A stretch of 64,000 nt of DNA from Paramoeba atlantica (Eukaryota > Protista > Discosea): NCBI GenBank assembly GCA_977017575.1, contig CDRNVI010000041.1:186001-250000 (forward strand). Direction: 5' to 3'. The position numbers and the translations under genes were made by a program. A model generated the notes under the pieces. It worked only from the letters and a program-made list of their open reading frames with translations. It was not told where the DNA came from and searched no databases. Shown one piece after another: positions 4,423 through 57,770 of this stretch (its first letter is position 1; every line of letters begins with the position of its first letter).

Positions 4423-5208
4423 ATGTCCAATAAGCTTAGTGTCCTCTTTGCCAAAACAGATAAAAAGAAGGCCAAGGCCGGCGTTGGAGATTCAGTGACC
4501 CGTAGAGATGCTTTTTCAGGTGAGTCGTCTTTTTCACAATCCAGTGTATCGATACACCTTGACGAACCTTCTGATATTCAGGTTATTGAAAAGGAAGCTG
4601 TACATTCTCCAATTGAGCATGCAAGCCCCAGTGATAGTGAGCCTCTGGATGATGTTATATCCGCATTGCAAGTCGACTCTGGTCCTAAGCTCTTTCGTGC
4701 TCGTGGTGGTCAAACCTCTGAGGCCCGCATGGACGCTATAAATTGGCCTGCATTGGGCTACACAGAAAGTAGGGCAAACAAACCTAAGAACATACGAAAG
4801 AATGAGGGAAATCAGATGAGAAACGCTTCTGGGACTGACGCAGAGCTCGTGCTATCTCGAACCCTCCAAGAAGAGCTGAGATATGATTCACCTGTAGGGG
4901 TTCAAGAGGGAAAAACCCACATCACAGCCCCTGTTGTATCCCCATCGGGGTCTGCTAAAGGAAAGTATGTGCCACCTAGCCAGAGACAGTCAGGAAATAA
5001 TACCGGAGCAATTGAATCGGCGAGCTGTGATAAAAACGAATATGCAAAGAAAAGGGCATCTCTTTCAGCAGAACACGGGACCAAACACCAGGAAAATGTA
5101 TCTGCTTTACCATTAAACTTAAAGTTGGCGTCCAATGATTCTACTTCGGGATCAGGACGTCCGAAGTATATTTCTCCAAGTCAAAGGCAAGTGACACAAC
5201 ATCTCTAG
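4423..5208 (+). CDS. Low-complexity hypothetical protein, possibly CDV3-like
   Basis: 262-codon ORF in cluster orientation. N-terminus LSVLFAKTDKKKAK recalls CDV3; NWPALG and two KY(V/I)(P/S)PSQR motifs. Confidence 0.5.
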   Translation: MSNKLSVLFAKTDKKKAKAGVGDSVTRRDAFSGESSFSQSSVSIHLDEPSDIQVIEKEAVHSPIEHASPSDSEPLDDVISALQVDSGPKLFRARGGQTSEARMDAINWPALGYTESRANKPKNIRKNEGNQMRNASGTDAELVLSRTLQEELRYDSPVGVQEGKTHITAPVVSPSGSAKGKYVPPSQRQSGNNTGAIESASCDKNEYAKKRASLSAEHGTKHQENVSALPLNLKLASNDSTSGSGRPKYISPSQRQVTQHL

Positions 5209-43510: not shown

Positions 43511-44927
43511 ACTCGAAAAATATAACTCGTTAATCACTGCATCCTTCCTAAAATTCTGTACGTAAACTTTTAATATATTTTTTTATATAATAATTTATTT
43601 TAGGCTCTTCGTTAAACGCGGTGGTTGCTTTCAACTTAGAAGTCACTCATGCTGCGCTATTCGCGTTGAAAACTACCGCCGCGTTTAACGAAGAGCCTAA
43701 AAAAGAAAATTGGCCAGGGACGCGGAAGAAAACGGAAGAATTTGAGCCAAAAATAGCCGATGTTTTGGTAAAAATGGGGTGATTTTTTGTATATAGAGCA
43801 CTAAAGTCGAGAATGCGACTCCAACCACACGATTCGTACGACTCAAAAAGACCTCTTGGTGTCCAAAAATTACTTTTTCGCATTTTTTGATCAAAAATGG
43901 GACATTTTGGGAGGCGTACCACGGCTTCAAGAAGCGACACCTCGCAAAACCAATGACGTAAAAAGCTAGAATAGGCCACGAACTATAAAAATACAATAGG
44001 CAAAACAAATTTGGAAAAATATTCTTTTTACCAATTTTTTCGTCAAGTTGAAAATTTTTTCAAAATTTTTTTTCCGAAAAAATCGGAACTTGACGGACCC
44101 GTCTTGCGGATACGAGGGGGGGTCACCCCCGGGTAGGGTATGCCCCCCCCATAGACCCCCCAGTTTTTTCAATTTTTGTTTTCAATTTTGGACCACCGGA
44201 TCCCCCTTTTATATTTTTTTCCTTTACGGCGTTTAACGAAGAGCTTAGAAAAGAAAAATTTGACAGGAGAGTAAAAGAAACCAGAGGGATAACTCTGGAT
44301 TTGGTCCAAAAAGAGCCGATAGTTGGGCAAAAATAGGGTTGTTTTTGCATATTTCCGCTCACATGTGTTTTCCTTCGGTTCGCACGATTTTGAACGAAGC
44401 AGGGTGGAGACCTCTTTTTTTGAAAGGCCCTTGAATTCACCCCGGCTTTTGAAGGGGGGGGGATTTACTTCGTGGGTTTACTTCTTCGTTTTGATTCATT
44501 TGGTTTACGCCAGGGGTGCAGTTAATGCCATGTCGGAACGCTTTTCTGACAGTAAGTTGGATATGCACTAATTCAGTCATCAAAAGCATATTTGTTGAAT
44601 GATCAGGCTAAAAATAGAAGAAGTGATGACTGCAACTGTAGATCTGCTATGTAAATGTAAACATTTTTTTAACAAATTTAGTTTCAATTGTATTTATTTG
44701 AGTTTAGAAAATGCGAAGTTACAAATACTTACAGAGGGTTTCCGAGACACAAAGTAAAACCACAGAAAAACTTTGATGCGATGAAACGTAAAAAAACGGT
44801 GCTGTGGACGAATTTAAGCCGAAAATTTCTCGAAAGAAAAGTGTTTTATTTCCTTCTCCAACCTTCGAATCATGAATTCAAAATTTTAAACCAACTTTCA
44901 CTTCCAAACGTCTTCTTACACACTTAT

Positions 44928-45269
44928 TCAGAAAATTAAGTATCTGTTTCTCTTCTTTTTCCCTTTGAAGTAAACGCTCGATGCGCGCTTCGCTTCTTCC
45001 GTAGTGCTAAAACACACGTGCGCCAGTCCTTTTTTTGATACGATTGTTATGCAATCGATTTCACCATACGAAGCGTAATGCTTGGTAAGGTCTTCTTTAG
45101 TCGTAGAGGAGGGAAGGTGTTCTATTGTGATTGAGCGCTCGTCACGCTCTTCGCGCGCAGAGCGCAAAACGTGTAGAGATTCTAAGTAATCATCTCTTTT
45201 GCGCTTTGTATCTCTTTCCTTGTCGGAAATGTCGTTACCATTGGTTGATTGATTCTCCGCCGAGGCCAT
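44928..45269 (-). CDS. Small RRM-domain ORF downstream of RepHel
   Basis: RNP2-like SITIEHLP, TTKEDLTKHYASYGEI and RNP1-like KGLAHVCF; ATG at 45269 gives 113 aa. Confidence 0.65.
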   Translation of the reverse strand: MASAENQSTNGNDISDKERDTKRKRDDYLESLHVLRSAREERDERSITIEHLPSSTTKEDLTKHYASYGEIDCITIVSKKGLAHVCFSTTEEAKRASSVYFKGKKKRNRYLIF

Positions 45270-45363
45270 AGTAAATTCAAAGAAAGTTTTTAAAAAAATC
45301 AAGCTGAGTCTAGAAACATTCAACTTAAAAAGCAATACATGAACGTAGAAGTCTTGTTTTTGA

Positions 45364-45560
45364 AGGGCCTGCCCGGAGGGCCCTTCGAGAGGGTGCAGAC
45401 CCGCTGCCGCGGGGGGTGCTTTACCTCGTGACATGTAATTTTGAAGGAAACAAGCTTCTGATAACTTTTTTTGCAGGGCCCGCCCGGAGCGCCCTTCGAG
45501 AGGGTACAGGCCCGCTGCCGCGGTGGGTGCTTTTGAAGCAAACAAGCTTCTGAAATTTCG
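45364..45560. repeat. 111-bp GC-rich tandem duplication between RepHel and the RRM ORF
   Basis: AGGGCC(T/C)GCCCGGAG(G/C)GCCCTTCGAGAGGGT at 45364 and 45475. Confidence 0.85.
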
Positions 45561-45761
45561 ATAAAAAAAATTGAAAGCAATTTTGACGGAGCGTAATTCT
45601 GCAGCTATGATGGAGACATTTTTTTTTGGTAGAGGGCGCGTGAGCGTTGGGGTCACTCGCACTTCTTCTGCCGAAGCTGAAGACGCCGGGCTTGTGACCG
45701 GTATCAAGCGTGCTTCCCCCCTAGAGAGGTCTTCCTAAGAAGATCGTTTCAATCTAATTTC

Positions 45762-48700
45762 TTAGAATTGATAAGTCAAATCGGTAAGCCGATTTGCTTT
45801 TTCCATGGCCGGAAATTTAGGCCTATGGTAACCTGAAGTCAGGTGTGTTCCTGGGCGATCTGTGCCCATGCCAGGGAGCACTCGAATATCATCGAGGCAT
45901 TGTGCCCTGGATATTGCTACTGTGAGCTTGGCGAGTTCCGGTCTCTTGGACCACGCCTTATCATTCAAGTCAAGAATAACACCTTTCTTCACGGTGATAC
46001 CTTGTACTTTGTGATACGTATAGGCAAATCCCAATTCCACTTGAAAGTTTCCTTGGGAAGCCTTATCATGGTGCTGCGCCTTTTTGGCGTAAAATTCTAC
46101 ACCTGACCCCTTCTCAATGCATTGCATAAAAGAAGGGGCTTTTCGTAGATAACGAACACCATCAATAGTGTCGTATGACAAATCGTCTGACACAAGGTCT
46201 CTCATTTCAATCACTGTCCCATTCGCAATTTTCATTGTATAAGGAGCAATGTTCTCGGTGATTACACCGGGTGCTCCTTTTACAAATACAGAAAATGCTT
46301 CAGGGTGTGTGTCAATGAGTTTACCTTGGACGTTATCGCCTGTCCATGCGAACAATGGGCAATTGTGACGTCTGGAAAAATTTCTTGCCATTGCGACATT
46401 AATCTTGTGCCGTTCAATATTTGTTCCAACAATGACAATTGCATTGCGGAACTTTTCTTGGTCCTCAGAGGTAAGAGGTTTTACCAATTGGATGAACTTC
46501 TTCAACCCCTCATTGGGAGCTTTTCGAAGAAGACGCAAGATATCTGAAAATACAGTATCTTGTCGTGCTCGCATTTGCTGTTTGAGTTCAAACACATACG
46601 AGACTTGAAAAATATTCTCAAAAATGGGATTATTACCAAGAGAGCTATCTTCTATGGTAAGAGACGCTCCTTGTACTGGTCTCAGCTGATAAAAATCTCC
46701 AACAAAGAGCATGTTGATGCCTCCATAGGGAAGCTGCTCATTTCCTTTGATTTGCTGCAGTCTAGTGTTGATACAGGCAAGGAAACACTTGCTGATCATT
46801 GACACTTCGTCGACTATGATTAATCGACATTTCTCATACCTTTGTTGGTATGGTAGAAGGCTACTGCTTGAAAGATGTTTCAAATTTCTTGCAGTAGCCC
46901 CTATCGGTATGCAGAGGGAAGCGTGTATTGTGCAACAGTGCAGTACTGATGCGGCGATCCCAGTGGGCGCCATTGCAATACATTGGCTTCCCAGTTCTTG
47001 CATTATGAAACGGGAAACTAGACTTTTCCCGGTTCCGGGGCCACCGAGCAGAAACATACATTTCCGCTCGGGGTCTAGTTTCCCGTTTAGTAAATCTTCA
47101 ATTTGATTTACGCACTGTTTCTGTGCTTGGTTCAGTTCAATGGAATTGTTGTCTTCGCGCAATATGTAGCTGCGATCGAACGTAATCTCTTCGTATTGAT
47201 TACTGCGAACCAGTGGACGATCCTCATTAAAATGAGCTCTGTCCACTGGTGCACTTGGCTCAGATTGAGCCGAAGTTGCAAATCGTTCGTTTTGGATCAT
47301 TTCAGCATAGCGCTCTCGCGCATTTATGACTGAAATATTGGACCTCGTCCTTGTCATTGTCGATGCAAGATCAACATTTTCTTCAGAGGAGTTCTCAGTA
47401 GAACCTCCTAACGCGGCCGTTAAAGCTCGCGTTTGTAGTTCGCAGTATGCATTCTGCTGAACCAATCGCTCTTCATTAACCACTGCAGTGTTCTGCTGTG
47501 CTTCAAGAGCATCTTGAAGATGAGGTTCAACCTCTCGCACTTCAAGCTCATTTTCGTACGCAATGTTGCGTGCTAATCTTGCTTCTTCCAGAGTGCAAGC
47601 ATCTTTGCGTCGATACAAATCTGCCGCGTTCTCTGTATTCTTCGAAGCATGTAAAAGCCGAAGAAAGTTGCACATTATGTCATACTTTCCAGGCGTATTT
47701 ATTTTCGCTTCATTGAGAAGCTTTTCAAACCCTTCTAGGGTCATTTCATGGCTCGGTGAGCCTTTCGTCCATGGGGAAAACAATGCCACCATGTGTTTCG
47801 CTACTCGAAGATGGCTTCGAGCTCGTGCCCCAGGTTCTTTTGAAGAACTCAATATGGGAAAACCTGGTATAGCTGGCACAGTGTGCAAAGAGCGCAACTG
47901 TTGCTCAACAATATCTCCAGGCTCAAATTCCGGGTGGCCGTCAATGTCCTCAAAGGCGTATCTCCCATTAGCACGACGTCCGCGACGACGTCTTCGATTT
48001 GTCCCTGACTCAAAATCTGAATCATGATCGGGCTCTTCTTGAGCTAGTTCAGCTCTTTTCTTCTTTACGCTGACAATGCCTGCATAGGAATACAGGTCAA
48101 GGTCTTGAAGATCTTCGCCCCTGTGCATGTAACGCACATGGAGTGGTGCAAGAACTGCACAATCATGTTCGGTGATCATTAGAGGAGCCTCTAAGATACC
48201 GTTGTCGAACTCCATATTAGAGTCTTGTGACGAATCATCGTCACTGATTTCTGGATCTCTGTGATCAGACTCACTTGGGATATTTGCCAGGAACTTCATT
48301 ACACGGTTCATATTGATCCATGTGAAGTTATGGCTCATATACTCGGAGGATTGGCCGAGACAAAAGGCAGTTGCCATTTCGATTGAAACTTCTATCTTTC
48401 GATGTGTCATGTTCGACAATTTCTGTAGAACTAAGCGCGCCATCGGAATGTCAGTTTGCACTCTGTTCTCTGAATTCAGACCCATTTGAAGGTGGTCATT
48501 GGCTGCGCGAAGTGCTGGTACAATGTACACAGGTGGACCAATGTCCTTGCTCATATATTTTATGAGATATTGCATAATTTTTATGCCTGGACCTTCGCTC
48601 CCAATGAAAACTACACATGTATTGCATCTTACGCAAGCAGTGAGTGTTTCATTGTACGGAACGGTGATGGATCCCCGTTTAGTGTGTTGTGTCGGGTCCT

Positions 48701-51700
48701 GGTTATTGCGCAGAAGCACAATCAGAGACCTTTCATCAAGTACTGGCCAAATGGTATCATTTTTAATCGGCCGTGTTGGAGCCTTGAGCCGGAATTCCGG
48801 TTGTCCGGATTCATCCATCTGAACCTCAACCTCTCTAACTTCCGTTTCATTTTCATGAAGTACGGATGGAATGCCATATCGGCATTTGTTCTTGCCAATG
48901 TTTCCTTTCATTTTGAAACACATGGGTCTGTGACCAACGTGCTGCTGAACATCAACAGCACATTTGGCCACATGTTCCCTGAAATAATCATCCTTTTCAT
49001 CAGGAATGATATGTAGACCTCCGCGATACATCTTTGAGTAGTCGAGCGTTGCATGGCCGTAAAGCTCCTTACTGATCCTTTGCGCCCACTCGGGCAGATC
49101 AGCGCGCATCGTCGTACCCAAAGACTTCGCGAGACCATCGTGCTCCTTCACAATGTGAATTAATTCGGAGACGTAATGTGGACTAAGATTCGTCCATAGC
49201 ACACTATGAAAGTGTAGCGCACCTCTTTTCTGGCATTCTACAACACCAAAAAATGCTCGAGGGCGACCAAAGAGGCCTTCAAGAACGTCACGTTCCTTCT
49301 TTACCTCATCTACATTCGACATTCCGTACAATTCGGTAAGAAGAGTACGGATTTGCCGTTCGAAAATGCTAGTGGATCTGACAGGATTCCCTTGCACAAG
49401 CTCAGATCGCTTGAGAAGGTTGGCCCGCATTTCCTGCATTTTTTCGCTCTCATCATTTGTGATGATTCTTAGAGCTAGAACGTTATCGTTCATGTTTGGA
49501 CTCACTGTGATCCAGTAACTTGGCAGTCCGTATCGCCTGTATAAGGCGTAGATCTGGCCTTGTGATGCCTTTCGCTTTGCTGGCGAAAAGGGTATCGTTT
49601 TTGCGCATACTTGCACAAATGGCAGAAACTTTGTTTCCAGAAGTTTCGCCTCGGAACTGTTTGGGTTCCTTATAGCCTGTTGCACAATGTGATAGAAAGC
49701 ATCAGCATTGCAAAAATTCATGAGGCTTCTGTGCATATCTTTGTTATACTTCAGATTTTGCACTACTGCTGATGAGACTGCACGGCGCCGAAGCACATCG
49801 TAGCAGTAAAATATGAATCCAGCATTCTTTGCAAATCGGGAATCCGATTGCTCTAGAATTTCCTTGATTTCATATAGTTCAAACGTTGAACCCTTAAAAG
49901 GGTACTTTTGCATCAGCGTCGGAAATGCTCCGAGCAAGATGTTTTCCATGTCGGTATACTCATTGAGTAAACCTTCTTTTTGTTTCAGTTGCATCGCCAC
50001 GGCATGCGTAATTTGCGCACCCGCCGGCGCATTGCTTACAGGGCTGTGATCAGTTACAAAAGATCGTGTGATCTCACCGCGAGGATCGCGATGTAACGTA
50101 TCGGAAGCCACTGCTTGGGTGACCATACTGTTGATGGCGTTTTCACCCTCCTGGGAAACAGATCTATCCCAAAGATGTGAGACAACGTCTCTACAATGTT
50201 GCTCGGTAACAACGTTGATCTTTCCTTCCTCTTTCAGTTGAGCATACACGTGGTTATGCTCACAGAGGAAGTGTACCCAGGTGTTCAGGGTCTCTGATTT
50301 CACGCCGAATATGCCACTCAGCTGTGCAGAACATAGTCTTTGACTACGTTTCGTTCTCCGTTCGTTGGCTATCCAAACAATTTGGATGTTCTTAATCGCG
50401 CCCTCGAGATCAGGAACTCTTTCGAGTTGCAAGAGCTCAAGGGTTTCGCGTGCTGTAGCCGTCACGTGTCCAGTGAACTTCGTGTCTGGCCTTAAGGATG
50501 CGGCATATGCGCCACCTTTCCTATGTACACTGATGATTGTGCAGTGTAAAAACACCTTTTGAAGAAGGATCTCTTCTACCAGCGTGGGTACTGGAAGGTG
50601 ATTTGTAGAAGGTTGTTCTACTGGACCGCGGGGAATTCTCCCTTTTTTGTCCATTATTCTTTGATCCCTTGCACAAAGTTGCGCTTCGGGATTCGGAAGG
50701 TCACTTTCGAGAAGAATAACTTTACAAGAATCACAACTTGTGATACGTTGGTCGTCGTTCATTCTCTTTTTGTACCTTTTCATGCACTCTTCTTGAGCTT
50801 CCGTACTGACTGAAAAATCTTCCAAAGGAAGACGATCAATGTAGGAAGTCTCATAGAAGTATTTTAGTGCGTCTTTTGGATTGCGCTCAATGTCAAAACG
50901 TGTTCGACGTGAGCCATCTCCATTGACTTCGTATGTGTCAAAATTGACAATACATTTCGCGATGCAACATCGTTCAAGCCAGTACCGAAGTTCATTGGCT
51001 GAAGATTCTTTGCATATTTCGTTTGTGTGAAAGATGGTATTTTCACACATCTGCATGATAGCATATGCTGCACTGTCAATAGTGCTAGCATTCGTCACAT
51101 TCGTGACAGTTGCTTGATTCAAAATTGAAACAATTTCATTTTCAAGAGAGGGACTCGTAATAAACGTATAAACGTTCTTTTCACCCTTCTTTTTCAAGGA
51201 AACAAGGACCCATATGGGCCCCGATGATTCATCTGTTTCCAAGTATGTAAATATGTGTAAACCCACACGGTTCCTTGAAGTGAACTTGTCACATTCATTG
51301 AATGGACATACTTTCACAGGAAATCGTCGTGTGTTAATGGTTTTACATAATACATTTTCCACAAAGTAGAGAATCTCTACTGATTTTAGTGGATGATCTA
51401 GCCTTGTGAATGCTTCTTTGGTACGCTTTTCTTGTGGATACAAAGTGAGGGGTATAACCCCCACTTCGCCTTTTTCCAGTGAAGCTTCGAGCCACTTCCA
51501 GAGTGATAAAAGTTTATCACGTTCTGTCAGTTTCGGCCAATCACGGTCTTGCGTGATAGTGTAGGCTATGGCTCCCAGGGAGAGCTCACCTTCATCGTTT
51601 CCTACTAAAGGAACTGGCGTAGTAGCCATGTTTCCAATATTGTAGACGGTTCGAATTGCCGCTATCTGTGTTTCCATAGAAGCTGCGCAATTATATGTGA

Positions 51701-52502
51701 ACACTCGTCGTTTAGTCAGACATACCATGGCGAGAGAATCGCCATTGCCTTTAACGTAAACGACGTTATGTCCATCACGATGTCTCTGAATAGAGCATCT
51801 TTTATCTCCATCGCTTTGGAGGGTTTCATCACAAACAATGTGTGAATTGATGAGAATATTCTCAATCAGTTGAAAAGATGTGAGTGTTAGCGTGGAGCAT
51901 TGCTTCACACGTTCCAGCTCATCATCCTGCGATACTGCATGAGCTCTGTTGCGCTCAGCTTGTGTGATCCGAAGTCGAAAAGCCCGAGCTTCAGCATGCC
52001 GCGGATGGCGGTAAAAATGCTTTTGAAGCCCCTTAAACGTGAACATTTGTTCGGTAGCGCACAAAGTGCATTTGAACTTGTTCTGTTCGCAGGGGAGGGC
52101 AAATTCGATCCAGTCGACTTTTGTTTGAACATAACGTGTATGCTCACTTGACACCAAATGGTATTCATCTGCCGGGATAATACCCGTTGTTCCTTGAATC
52201 TGTGCGAAATACGTACATACTTCGCACAGAGGAACATTCATATCAGTTAGGAGCACCTGTGAAGGGTGTCCCATACTGAGTATGTGTCGCATCATAGATT
52301 TGACACTTAGTTTGCGTATGGCGTGCAGTGCGCATACATACGATCCATTAGAGAAACTTACGTGAAGCTCCCATTTCGGATGTAGATACGCCATTTCCCG
52401 ATGTTTCAGAGAATTCGCGTGATTAGTATTCACCATGACTGGCGGGAATCTTGCAAGATAGCAAAGTAATTGAAAGGAATACATAAATGCATTCCTTCGC
52501 AA
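45762..52502 (-). mobile_element. Helitron RepHel: Zn fingers, HUH Rep endonuclease and PIF1/SF1B helicase (Helitron2/proto-Helentron-like; no AP endonuclease)
   Basis: Rep motif 1 YWITVSPN (~49500), motif 2 FFGVVECQKRGALHFHSVLW (~49205-49255), motif 3 YLIKYMSK (~48550). Helicase motifs GGPGTGKS, IIVDEVSMI, GDFYQLRPV, ELKQQMRA, AYTYHKVQG and VAISRA. Confidence 0.95.
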
Positions 52503-54124
52503 TGTTGTGCTACATGCTTCGTTATAGCCTCTTTTTCAAGAGGTGTTTCAGAACACCCAGGCAGTTTGCACTGGTATATGTTTTCTGTTTCAAGGACGTT
52601 TTCTGTCCAAAATGCGTACCACTGCTTGTGCTCAGAGCACTTCGCAGGATTGTGCTTCTTGGGCACACGCCCCGCATCAAAGAATGAACAAGCTTCACAG
52701 CTTTGTTCACTTGTTTTCATATGCTTTTTTTCGACGTGCTTTCTTGCAGCGCCGAGGCTCATCACTTCACCGGAACAAGCGTCCGCAACACACTTGTAAC
52801 CGGATTCTGTCCCTGCGCTTGCGTGAGCTATGGGAAGCTCGTGCCATAGTTCGAACAGTTGCTGTTCGTGTTCGTGGCTGATACTCGAAATATGCTCTCG
52901 AGTTTTCAAGATAGGACGCTGTCCATGCATACTCGAAAAAAAGGAGCATGCTTCACAAATGTCGTGATCTCCGCGCCCATGTTCGAAAACATGTTTGCGC
53001 ATGTAGTAGTACATAAATGTGTACGACGAAGGGTTTGCTTTACCCCGTGATTCTGCACATTTTGTGCACCGAAAGCCTGCAGACATGGTACCTTGCACCT
53101 CAAAGTCCATCCACATGTCGTACATCTCCTTCTCGGTTTTGTGATTCGCACTCGAGAGATGCTCTCGAGTACGTCTTATGGGGGGTTTCCCTTGCAACTC
53201 CTCGAAGAAGGAGCACTCTTTGCAATGGGAATGATCCCCGCGCCCATGTTCGAAAACATGTTTGCGCATGTCATCATACTTGAAAGTACGATGTTCAGGG
53301 TTTTGATCGCCCTGTGCTGTGGCACATTTCGTGCACCGAAAGCCTGCAGACACGGTACCTTGCACCTCAAGGTCCATCCACATGTCGTACATCTCCTTCT
53401 CGGTTTTGTGATTCGCACTCGAGAGATGCTCTCGAGTACGTCTTATGGGGGGTTTCCCTTGCAACTCCTCGAAGAAGGAGCACTCTTTGCAATGGGAATG
53501 ATCCCCGCGCCCATGTTCGAAAACATGTTTGCGCATGTCATCATACTTGAAAGTACGATGTTCAGGGTTTTGATCGCCCTGTGCTGTGGCACATTTCGTG
53601 CATGTAAAGCCATTGACAATGCTTCCTTCAATTTGAAGGACTTTCCACGCGTTAAAAATCTCTTTTTCACGCTTGTGTTTCACACGCTCGTCGTGCTTTT
53701 GTACGCTCAAAACGGGGGGTTTTCCCATGAGCTCTTGGAAGAACGAACAAGGTTCACAAATGATATGCAACCCTTTTAAATGTTCATTTACGTGCCGCTT
53801 CATCAGGGGAGCTGTCAATTCCACCCGAATGTTCGCGTTAGCACATTCTCGGCAGGTGTAAAATTCACCTTCTTCAGCAACATGCTGTTGCCATAGCTCG
53901 TATATTTGAGCTGAGCTTTTATGTGCTTTGCTAGCACTGTGATTAAGGGTCATGCGCACCCTTTTCTTTCCTTTCTTTCTTTGAAAGAAAGTGCAGCATT
54001 CGCAGTCGCGATATGCTTCGCCCAGAGCTTTGTTAGAGCTCAGTTGGCTTCCCCCACCCCCGGCCCCAGCAAGCGACACCTCCAACGACGCCGACGACAC
54101 GGACCACGACGAATCAGAAGACAT
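52430..54124 (-). CDS. Tandem zinc-finger array; probable N-terminus of RepHel, split by a 1-nt frameshift at about 52457
   Basis: Six bipartite units (CxxCxFF..Hx5H..W..CxxC..HxxxH). Unit 7 straddles the frame change and unit 8 lies in the RepHel ORF. Confidence 0.88.
   Translation of the reverse strand: MSSDSSWSVSSASLEVSLAGAGGGGSQLSSNKALGEAYRDCECCTFFQRKKGKKRVRMTLNHSASKAHKSSAQIYELWQQHVAEEGEFYTCRECANANIRVELTAPLMKRHVNEHLKGLHIICEPCSFFQELMGKPPVLSVQKHDERVKHKREKEIFNAWKVLQIEGSIVNGFTCTKCATAQGDQNPEHRTFKYDDMRKHVFEHGRGDHSHCKECSFFEELQGKPPIRRTREHLSSANHKTEKEMYDMWMDLEVQGTVSAGFRCTKCATAQGDQNPEHRTFKYDDMRKHVFEHGRGDHSHCKECSFFEELQGKPPIRRTREHLSSANHKTEKEMYDMWMDFEVQGTMSAGFRCTKCAESRGKANPSSYTFMYYYMRKHVFEHGRGDHDICEACSFFSSMHGQRPILKTREHISSISHEHEQQLFELWHELPIAHASAGTESGYKCVADACSGEVMSLGAARKHVEKKHMKTSEQSCEACSFFDAGRVPKKHNPAKCSEHKQWYAFWTENVLETENIYQCKLPGCSETPLEKEAITKHVAQHCEGMHLCIPFNYFAILQDSRQSW
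52976..53600 (-). repeat. 267-bp (89-aa) near-identical tandem duplication within the Zn-finger array
   Basis: CCCATGTTCGAAAACATGTTTGCGCATG at 52976, 53243 and 53510. Confidence 0.95.
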
Positions 54125-54253: not shown

Positions 54254-57200
54254 TTAGAAGTCACTCATGCTGCGCGCTTCGCGTTCAAAACTACCACCGC
54301 GTTTAACGAAGAGCCTAAAAAAGAAACTTCGGCCTGGACAGCTAAAGTAAAACAAAGATTATAGCCAAAAATAGCCGATTTTAGGGTAAAATTTTTAGGG
54401 TAAAATTTTTGGGTATTTTTGCTCTCAGAGCGCTAAATCTGACATTTGCGTGTGAGAAATCACTCGTAGGTGTGAATGGAAGCCTACTGAACGTATTGGG
54501 TATAGAATACGACTCCAACCACACCATTCTTTCGACATAAAAAGACCCCTTTGGGTTCGAAAATTACTTTTCCGCAATTTTTGGTCAAAAATGGGCCATT
54601 TTGGGAGGCGTGCCACGGCTAGAAGATGGGGTAACTTGCGAAAACAACGGTGTAGATGGCTAGTATAGGTCCTAAACTCTCAAAATACAATAGCGAAAAA
54701 AAATTTGAAAAAATATTTTTTTTACCATTTTTTCCGCCAAGTTGAATTTTTTCTCAATTTTTTTTTTTGAAAAAATCTAAACTTGGCGGACCCGTCCTGC
54801 GGATACGCGGGGGGGTCACCCCCGGGTAGTGGGGTGGAAAATGCGCGCCAAGACCCCGGTACCCCTTCTGCGGTTTTGTTTCGAAAATTTGCTCGACCAT
54901 GACCCCCCCCCCCCTGGACCCCCCATTTTTTTCAATTTTGGACCACCGGAGCCCCCTTTTATATTTTTTTCCTTTATTATATTACTGTGTTCCTCTTATA
55001 TTTTCACTGTTTTTGTTCACATTTTTTCAACGTTGAAAACTACCGCCGCGTTTAACGAAGAGCCTGAAAAAGAAAATTTGGCCTGTAAAGCTGAAGAAAA
55101 CGGAAAGATTATAGCCAAAAATAGCCGAATTTCGGGCAAAAATGGGGTGATTTTCGCGTATTTTCTCAGAGCACTAAATCCGACATTTGCGCGTGGGAAA
55201 TCACTCGCAGGCATGAATGAAAGCCTACCGAACGTATTGGGTAGAGAATGCGACTCCAACCATACCATTCTTTCGACACAAAAATGCCCCTTTAGGTCCG
55301 AAAAATACTTTTTCACCTTTTCTAGTCAAAAATGGGTCATTTTGGGGGGCGCACCACGGTTCGAAGAAGTGATACCTTGCGAAAACAACTGCGTAGAAAG
55401 CTAGTGTAGGTCCCAAACTATCAAAATACAATAGGGGAAACGATTTTGGAAAAATATTTTTTTTGTCATTTTTTTCGCCAAGTTGAAATTTTTTTCAAAA
55501 AATTTTTTCCGAAAAAATCCGAACTTGGCGGACCCGTCATGCGGATACGCGGGGGGGTCACCCCCGGGTAGGGGGGTGGAAAATGCGCGCCAAGACCCCG
55601 GCTACCCTTTCTGCGGTTTTTTTTTCGAAAACTAATTTTTTCGAAAAAATTTGCTCGACCATGCCCCCCCCCCCTGGACCCCCCCCCTGGACCCCCCCCC
55701 TGGACCCCCCCCCTGGACCCCCCCCCTGGACCCCCCCCATGGACCCCCCATTTTTTTCAAATTTTTTTTCAGTTTTGGACCACCGGAGCCCCCTTTTATA
55801 TTTTTTTCTTCTATTATATTACTGTGTTCCCCTTTATATTTTCACTGTTTTTGTTCACTTTTTTTTCAATAATCGAGTGTAGAGCGGTAGTTTTACAACC
55901 ACCGCAATAATATTTTCTTTTTTAGGCTCTTCGTTAAACGCGGTGGTTGCTTTCAACTTAGAAGTCACTCATGCTGCGCGCTTCGCGTTGAAAACTACCG
56001 CCGCGTTTAACGAAGAGCCTAAAAAAGAAAATTTAGCCTGGAAAACGGAAAGATTATAGCCAAAAATAGCCGAATTTCGGGTACAAATGGGGTCATTTTC
56101 GCATATTTTTGCTCTCAGAGCACTAAATCCGACATTTGCGCGTGGGAAATCACTCGCAGGCATGAATGAAAGCCTACCGAACGTATTGGGTAGAGAATAC
56201 GACTCCAACCATACCATTCTTTCGACACAAAAATGCCCCTTTAGGTCCGAAAAATACTTTTTCACCTTTTTTAGTCAAAAATGGGTCATTTTGGGGGGCG
56301 CACCACAGTTCGAAGAAGTGATACCTTGCGAAAACAACTGCGTAGAAAGCTAGTGTAGGTCCCAAACTATCAAAATACAATAGGGGAAACGATTTTGGAA
56401 AAATATCTTTTTTGCCATTTTTTTCGCCAAGTTGAAATTTTTTTCAAAATTTTTTTTCCGAAAAAATCCGAACTTGGCGGACCCGTCATGCGGATACGCG
56501 GGGGGGTCACCCCCGGGTAGGGGGGTGGAAATTGCGCGCCAAGACCCCGGCTACCCTTTCTGCGGTTTTTTTTCGAAAACTAATTTTTTCGAAAAAATTT
56601 GCTCGACCATGACCCCCCCCCCTGGACCCCCCCCCTGGACCCCCCCCCTGGACCCCCCCCATGGACCCCCCATTTTTTTCAATTTTTTTTTTCAGTTTTG
56701 GACCACCGGAGCCCCCTTTTATATTTTTTTCTTCTATTATATTACTGTGTTCCTCTTTATATTTTCACTGTTTTTGTTCACTTTTTTTTCAATAATCGAG
56801 TGTAGAGCGGTAGTTTTACAACCACCGCAATCTTTTTTAGGGCTCTTCGTTAAACGCGGTGGTTGCTTTCAACTTAGAAGTCACTCATGCTGCGCGCTTC
56901 GCGTTGAAAACTTCCACCGCGTTTAACGAAGAGCCTAAAAAAGAAAATTTAGCCTGGAAAACGGAAAGAATATAGCCGAAAATAGCCGAATTTCGGGTAC
57001 AAATGGGGTCATTTTCGAATATTTTTGCTCTCAGAGCACTAAATCCGACATCTGCGCGTGGGAAATCACTCGCAAGGCATGAATGAAAGCCTACCGAACG
57101 TATTGGGTAGAGAAATACGACTCCAACCATACCATTCTTTCGACACAAAAATGCCCTTTAGGTCCCGAAAATACTTTTTCACCTTTTTAGTCAAAAATGG

Positions 57201-57770
57201 GTCATTTTGAGGGGCGCACCACAGTTCGAAGAAGTGATACCTTGCGAAAACAACTGCGGAGAAAGCTAGTGGAGGTCCCAAACTATCAAAATACAATAGG
57301 GGAAACGATTTTGGAAAAATATTTTTTTTGTCATTTTTTTCGCCAAGTTGAAATTTTTTTCGAAAAAATTGTTCCGAAAAATCCGAACTTGGCGGACCCG
57401 TCCTGCGGATACGCGGGGGGGTCACCCCCCGGGTAGGGGGGTGGAAAATGCGCGCCAAGACCCCGGCTACCCTTTCTGCGGTTTTTTTTCGAAAACTAAT
57501 TTTTTCGAAAAAATTTGATCGACCATGCCCCCCCCCCCCTGGACCCCCCCCCTGGACCCCCCCCCTGGACCCCCCCCTGGACCCCCCCCCTGGACCCCCC
57601 CCATGGACCCCCCATTTTTTTCAAAAAAATTTTCAGTTTTGGACCACCGGAGCCCCCTTTATATTTTTTTCTTCTATTATATTACTGTGTTCCTCTTTAT
57701 ATTTTCACTGTTTTTGTTCACTTTTTTTTCAATAATCGAGTGTAGAGCGGTAGTTTTACAACCACCGCAA
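54254..57770 (+). repeat. Head-to-tail array of four R1 units (54254-55029 truncated, 55030-55907, 55908-56830, 56831-57770)
   Basis: Period of about 920-940 bp. Complete units have a 97-bp hairpin at one end, a variable (CTGGACCCCCC)n minisatellite, and GCGGTAGTTTTACAACCACCGCAA at the other end. Confidence 0.93.

Follow-up and report, generated by a model that had tools for sequence, protein, structure and literature searches.

In described Helitrons, a zinc-binding region at the N-terminus of the transposase is followed by a Rep nuclease of the HUH, two-tyrosine (Y2) type and then by a PIF1-like SF1B helicase; a DUF6570 domain often precedes the Rep domain, and a hairpin lies at the end of the element. 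In Helraiser, the 489 amino acids at the N-terminus, which include a zinc-finger-like motif, are required for the binding and cleavage of single-stranded DNA (PMC4778049), and for other Helitrons a single zinc-finger-like motif at the N-terminus has been reported (PMC5148889). In a survey from 2025, none of 57 trypanosomatid genomes yielded a DNA transposon, and the only DNA transposons reported from kinetoplastids are Merlin elements, in Bodo saltans and Perkinsela (PMC12278014).

The window analyzed here, a stretch of 64,000 nucleotides from an assembly of Paramoeba atlantica, contains an element with the hallmarks of a Helitron RepHel protein (Table 1). The HUH motif and the two catalytic tyrosines of Rep are both present in the RepHel frame, where the translation of the Rep domain shows ALHFHSVLW (with HFH) and YLIKYMSK, and the PIF1-like helicase is fused C-terminal to Rep. 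In the gene of this family, an array of ~890 aa in which zinc fingers alternate comes first, at the N-terminus, and is followed by DUF6570, Rep HUH/Y2 and the PIF1-like helicase, an order which matches Helraiser and other known Helitrons in the succession of zinc-binding region, nuclease and helicase, and known Helitrons also in the position of DUF6570 and in the hairpin at the element end. The family departs from the Helitrons described in PMC4778049 and PMC5148889 in that their single motif contrasts with 16–22 fingers here, organized among the element copies as 8–11 tandem bipartite units. The intact protein, at 2,965 aa, is also about twice as long as Helraiser, whose residue numbering extends to 1486 (PMC4778049), and its host, unlike those of known Helitrons, is a kinetoplastid-type protist. 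The genome (45.7 Mb in 248 contigs) is of the kinetoplastid type, with which it agrees that the kinetoplastid spliced leader, queried by its 3′ half, has 11 matches in it at one mismatch, against 0 for the control. The element is multicopy and mobile, with at least 16 loci that bear the junction described below and about 20 that bear Rep, on different contigs. It also adds evidence for an active-looking class II element in a kinetoplastid-type genome, whereas surveys of trypanosomatids found none (PMC12278014).

Table 1. Features of the Helitron-type element in the window (positions are those of the window)
Feature	Position	Strand	Details
Whole transposase gene, window copy	45762..54124	-	2,787 codons if single frame; split into ORF A and RepHel frame
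ORF A	52430..54124	-	564 aa
Zinc-finger array	51975..54013	-	8 bipartite units = 16 fingers
267-bp (89-codon) tandem repeat within array	52965..53687	-	TRF; 2 near-identical units in window
RepHel frame	45762..52502	-	Open, 2,246 codons
Cys-to-Phe codon	52472..52474	-	TTC in window, TGC in every other aligned copy
One-base loss	52447..52448	-	TT in window, TTT in 15/15 other junction copies
DUF6570 domain (PF20209)	50235..50612	-	Pfam, E 2.9e-11
Rep (HUH, two-tyrosine) nuclease, Helitron_like_N (PF14214)	49197..49859	-	Pfam, E 2.1e-21, above cut-off
PIF1-like SF1B helicase (PF05970)	46554..47135	-	Pfam, E 5.9e-25; Walker A GGPGTGKS
Long hairpin, element 3′ end	43589..43711	.	47-nt arms, 29-nt loop

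In the window copy the transposase is distributed over two reading frames, and the finger repeat crosses the change of frame: ORF A ends in ...GMHLCIPFNYFAILQDSRQSW followed by its stop codon, and the RepHel frame, which starts ...FPPVMVNTNHANSLKH, contains two more finger units at that point. The initial annotation had proposed that the zinc-finger ORF and RepHel are one gene split by a single base, to be checked against other genomic copies, and this comparison supports the proposal. An alignment of 181 nt across the junction in 16 copies (the window and 15 others), together with their translations, reads caagaTTccc in the window and caagaTTTccc in all of the rest. Thirteen of the 15 other copies, including diverged subfamilies at ~92% identity, continue in frame across the junction as CIPCNYFAILQ(D/E)(F/L)PPVMV..., rather than keeping two separate ORFs, and the remaining two have a different one-base deletion, 50 nt upstream of the junction lesion. 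In the window, by comparison, ORF A proceeds past the lesion only for QDSRQSW and then stops. The copy on contig C43 (L021:113-9010) is a single uninterrupted ORF of 2,965 codons, the only fully open frame among the ~20 Rep-bearing loci. Because every other junction copy carries the extra T, nearly all of them are in frame and the C43 copy is open over its whole length, the two ORFs are, on the evidence of the aligned copies, one Helitron transposase gene, which a missing base disrupts in the window copy. The length originally suggested for the fusion, 2,787 aa, is exactly that of the intact protein minus two 89-aa units (178 residues). The frame change itself had been placed at 52457 and has to be moved by 10 nt, to the lesion. 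Of the fused reading offered with it, the 22-residue register stands, and the residues ...AILARF... do not, two of them being off; the translations of the other copies give CIPCNYFAILQDFPPVMVNTNH as the ancestral reading. Settling the split in this manner avoids the annotation of a false stand-alone zinc-finger gene.

It is scarcely credible that the element uses two independent ORFs, or that they are joined by programmed ribosomal frameshifting such that the zinc-finger protein is made in excess and the fusion only rarely. The RepHel frame does possess an ATG (52436-52434) that overlaps the TGA of ORF A, within the ATGGTGA at 52436-52430 that the initial annotation had pointed out, and this is the kind of feature that such an arrangement might use, but the same codon is an internal Met in the in-frame copies, diverged subfamilies among them, and the intact C43 copy has no stop. 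As had also been remarked at the outset, the junction contains no canonical slippery heptamer. Programmed -1 or +1 frameshifting was therefore rejected, given that other copies run in frame through this point. The frame split is most probably ordinary decay, and neither frameshifting nor a two-gene arrangement is needed to account for it.

Aligned over 7,851 nt, the window and C43 copies share 99.8% identity and are separated by a single gap. Its private substitutions comprise about 10 that are non-synonymous and 2–3 that are synonymous, three further differences at the repeat boundary having been set aside as a likely alignment artefact, and since this is the ratio expected without selection the copy looks young and decaying. 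One of the changes is the Phe codon listed in Table 1, by which the type-A finger of unit 9 loses its second zinc ligand and which lies 26 nt upstream of the lost T. A copy on contig C52 is equally close to C43 and has its own, different one-base deletion. The window very probably holds a very young, dead or dying Helitron-type copy, in which the single transposase gene has lost one T of a TTT. An unlikely alternative is that the T was dropped in error from a short homopolymer during sequencing or assembly and that the window copy is truly in frame, in which case it would be a second full-length ORF, of 2,787 aa, with the Cys-to-Phe change still present. The location of the lesion in a T run is consistent with an error of this type, as is the fact that the near-identical, full-length C52 copy likewise has just one deletion of a single base, within a short AA run, and that in another assembly from this organism, ENA ERZ24900291, the frame changes elsewhere again, in tandem copies on contig C38. 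However, a run of three bases is short for a homopolymer error, and the predominance of non-synonymous private substitutions, one of them at a zinc ligand so close to the lost base, is as in an unselected copy. The exact product of ORF A has no record in other public assemblies.

Whatever befell the window copy, the main interest of the element is its array, which comprises 16–22 fingers, changes in unit number, is constrained and has no detectable relatives. The initial annotation's count of eight bipartite units and 16 fingers for the window copy is correct, and in the intact C43 protein residues 38-895 form ten bipartite units (20 fingers). The first half of each unit is a finger referred to here as type A, CxxCx[FY]F-x14-H-x5-H (CxxC-x17-H-x5-H), after which comes a helix that always contains one Trp. 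Type B, the C2H2 finger that makes up the second half, has the pattern [FY]xC-x2/4-C-x12/21-H-x3/4-H; four units (1, 7, 8 and 10) have the exact x12 pattern, the middle units have a 9-residue insert (C-x21-H), and the type-B finger of unit 9 is degenerate, with one Cys lost. Eight diverged units are 21–33% identical to the amplified unit, two closer. Among the eight diverged units compared, C4, C7, F10, H31, W41, C56, H81 and H85 are invariant, and this sharing of Cys, His, Phe and Trp positions is, as judged by sequence comparison, far beyond chance.

The difference in unit number between the window and C43 copies (8 and 10, respectively) is located in the 89-codon tandem repeat. This unit is present once in the C32 copy and in an old copy on contig C91, and twice in the window, C52, C82 and C34 copies; C43 has four, and each of the two C38 element copies has five. 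Units U3-U5 of C43 differ from one another by 0–1 nt, which implies that the expansions are very recent. Presumably, unit number drifts by unequal recombination or by slippage of the 267-bp repeat.

Relative to C43, the C91 copy is ~20% diverged in the array and nevertheless keeps every Cys and His ligand. Between these two copies the array has a dN/dS of 0.36 (dN 0.115, dS 0.32, over 338 codons), a sign of purifying selection, which suggests that the array is functional. Part of this divergence is neutral decay after insertion, so the constraint on the active lineage is probably stronger. In the old C91 copy (L034), whose array is ~80% identical, RepHel and the array fragment are found on opposite strands, which indicates an internal rearrangement.

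The predicted structure of the unit offers some indication of what its two halves might be. AlphaFold2 models one bipartite unit with a pLDDT of 83 and a pTM of 0.70, and half A alone with a pLDDT of 91. An exhaustive structural search with half A gave its best match in yeast Mod5, where 43 of the 47 residues superpose on the C-terminal zinc finger (3eph) with an rmsd of 2.3 Å and a Z of 4.6; it gave further matches to JAZ (2mkn), to TUT4, TUT1 and ZFa, and to zinc-finger chains in complexes of the spliceosomal U1 and U2 snRNPs, which are probably U1-C and SF3a66. Among the 30 top matches, nine are U1/matrin/JAZ-type fingers that cover the whole model, at Z values of only 2.3–4.6, low values being expected for a domain of 47 residues. 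Foldseek searches of the PDB gave a single weak match for half A, to a U11 snRNP chain, with none significant, and no match for the whole unit, and the sequence of the entire array likewise had no match in the PDB. The Pfam models zf-U1, zf-met and zf-C2H2_jaz do not match the array even at E <= 10. Neighbors in the ESM Atlas are clusters with zf-met/zf-C2H2_jaz and C2H2 domains, all with scores < 0.9 (zf-met/jaz 0.87–0.88).

In the model, then, the type-A finger weakly resembles the U1/matrin/JAZ-type fingers, which is a matter of resemblance and not of membership. Shared features are the CxxC ... H-x5-H arrangement and a long C-terminal helix, and the superposition has an rmsd of 1.6–2.3 Å over 35–43 residues. 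In contrast, the spacer between Cys and His, which is 12 residues in the U1/matrin/JAZ family, is 17 in type A and is accompanied by an extra short helix, and type-A fingers alternate with a second type of finger. U1/matrin/JAZ-type fingers usually bind RNA duplexes or stems, and ZFa and JAZ contain several of them with long linkers in between. The mitoribosomal proteins mS157 and mS132 were considered as relatives of type A and rejected; they share CSACSFF, with a profile E of only 0.45, and the literature on them yielded nothing relevant.

The type-B half appears to behave like a classical C2H2 finger. Its profile matches finger 5 of GLI (E 0.047) and finger 3 of TFIIIA, below or near threshold, and hhalign gives a probability of 89% against the Spin-doc zinc finger (PF18658). 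Where the units have the x12 spacing, type B reads [FY]-x-C-x2/4-C-x12-H-x3/4-H, as do classical C2H2 fingers, although the insert of the middle units and the lack of TGEKP-type linkers set it apart from them. Vertebrate Spin-doc repeat proteins (ZFTA/SPIN-DOC) match type B at a library-wide E of 3e-7 to 4e-4, whereas Pfam's own Spin-doc and C2H2 models remain sub-threshold on it; with ORF A and the array as queries Pfam gave noise only, even at E <= 10, and zf-C2H2 was not reported. In most units the helix residues of type B at the usual DNA-reading positions, before the first His, are alike, which argues against a classical base-reading array.

Relatives of the array were sought by several routes. 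A word search with the full-length protein retrieved no relative of the array (region 1-890). The same type of search with ORF A retrieved two proteins from ENA ERZ24900291, which were rejected as independent relatives, being derived from the same organism's C38 tandem copies (L037) at 99.7% identity. A profile of the unit found 19 matches among 1.84 billion protein representatives; the strong ones are ENA fragments of the same element, and the weak ones are vertebrate ZFTA/SPIN-DOC proteins, in the type-B half only. JGI metagenome contigs, scanned with the array as a single protein, contained no relative. By Pfam, word, profile and metagenome searches, the array therefore seems to be without detectable relatives outside this organism. 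Type-A fingers gave 134 matches within the genome, every one of them on a contig where the element, whole or in part, is also present.

Helitrons often capture genes, and it could be asked whether the array is a captured fragment of a host gene that became fused to RepHel and that does not serve to recognize the ends but, for instance, binds RNA, directs the protein to the nucleus or recruits a host factor. The structural lead for type A is consistent with this, in that U1/JAZ-type fingers usually bind RNA duplexes, and so is the presence in the same genome of a second RepHel family with just one N-terminal C2H2 finger. However, no host donor gene turned up in this genome, as the confinement of type-A matches to element-bearing contigs illustrates, the searches of public proteins retrieved no relatives, and purifying selection keeps the array inside the element. 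Capture is for these reasons distinctly improbable. The single finger of the second family suggests that only the family of the window element has undergone the expansion that produced the array. This second, distant family is represented by a RepHel on contig C99 (L041:689-7063, minus strand), an open ORF of 2,124 aa that is 27% identical in Rep and that has, in addition to its N-terminal finger, a C-terminal Ulp1-like cysteine protease; a long tandem array with a 24-bp period lies just upstream of it.

Homology between the window and C43 ends sharply at 43597, beside the long hairpin at the 3′ end, and this hairpin also closes the neighboring R repeats. The 5′ end of the element falls among R repeats. 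Of the traits of the Helitron2 subgroup, which are asymmetric terminal inverted repeats and a hairpin at each terminus, the 3′ hairpin was observed. Upstream of the gene, each R repeat of ~0.9 kb contains one tandem array of a 13-bp motif (CCCCCCCCCTGGA, 4.5–6.5 copies), and these arrays are found at 55666-55749, 56614-56671 and 57531-57613 in the window.

Considered together with Helraiser, the array may be the nucleic-acid-binding module of the element, engaging its ends or its targets, and would stand in for the zinc-finger-like domain with which that transposase binds DNA at its N-terminus. In such a scheme, the U1/JAZ-like fingers could grip double-helical stems, for example the ~45-bp terminal hairpins, and the C2H2 fingers could contribute contacts to DNA. 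The array might bind the long hairpin ends of the element; the initial annotation had suggested that it reads these termini or chooses targets, to which the fold of the type-A finger lends weak and indirect support. A more specific proposal, which we consider quite unlikely as it stands, is that a lineage-restricted, rapidly expandable array of alternating duplex-binding and C2H2 fingers measures and coats the unusually long terminal hairpins. If it were correct, the number of units would be expected to co-vary with the length of the hairpin stem, and the array would represent a new form of end recognition by an HUH transposase, within a branch of eukaryotes that is regarded as almost lacking DNA transposons. 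The array would also offer a natural system for studying how HUH transposases recognize structured single-stranded DNA or hairpin ends.

Other arrangements of element sequence occur in the genome. Contig C38 (L025, L036; L037 in the ENA assembly) carries two tandem 5′ element copies, 7.2 kb apart, each of which ends at CDS position 4848 and has five amplified finger units, and the same tandem arrangement is present in the independent ENA assembly ERZ24900291. Isolated 5′ fragments of the element that have no RepHel are located at C43:167279-168758 and C19:17875-18513; these consist of the upstream region and the first finger units, and are open for 345 aa. Within the window element, a short ORF that includes an RRM-like segment (ITIEHLPSSTTKEDLTKHYASYGEIDCITIV...) resides just 3′ of the RepHel stop, at 44928-45707 on the minus strand.
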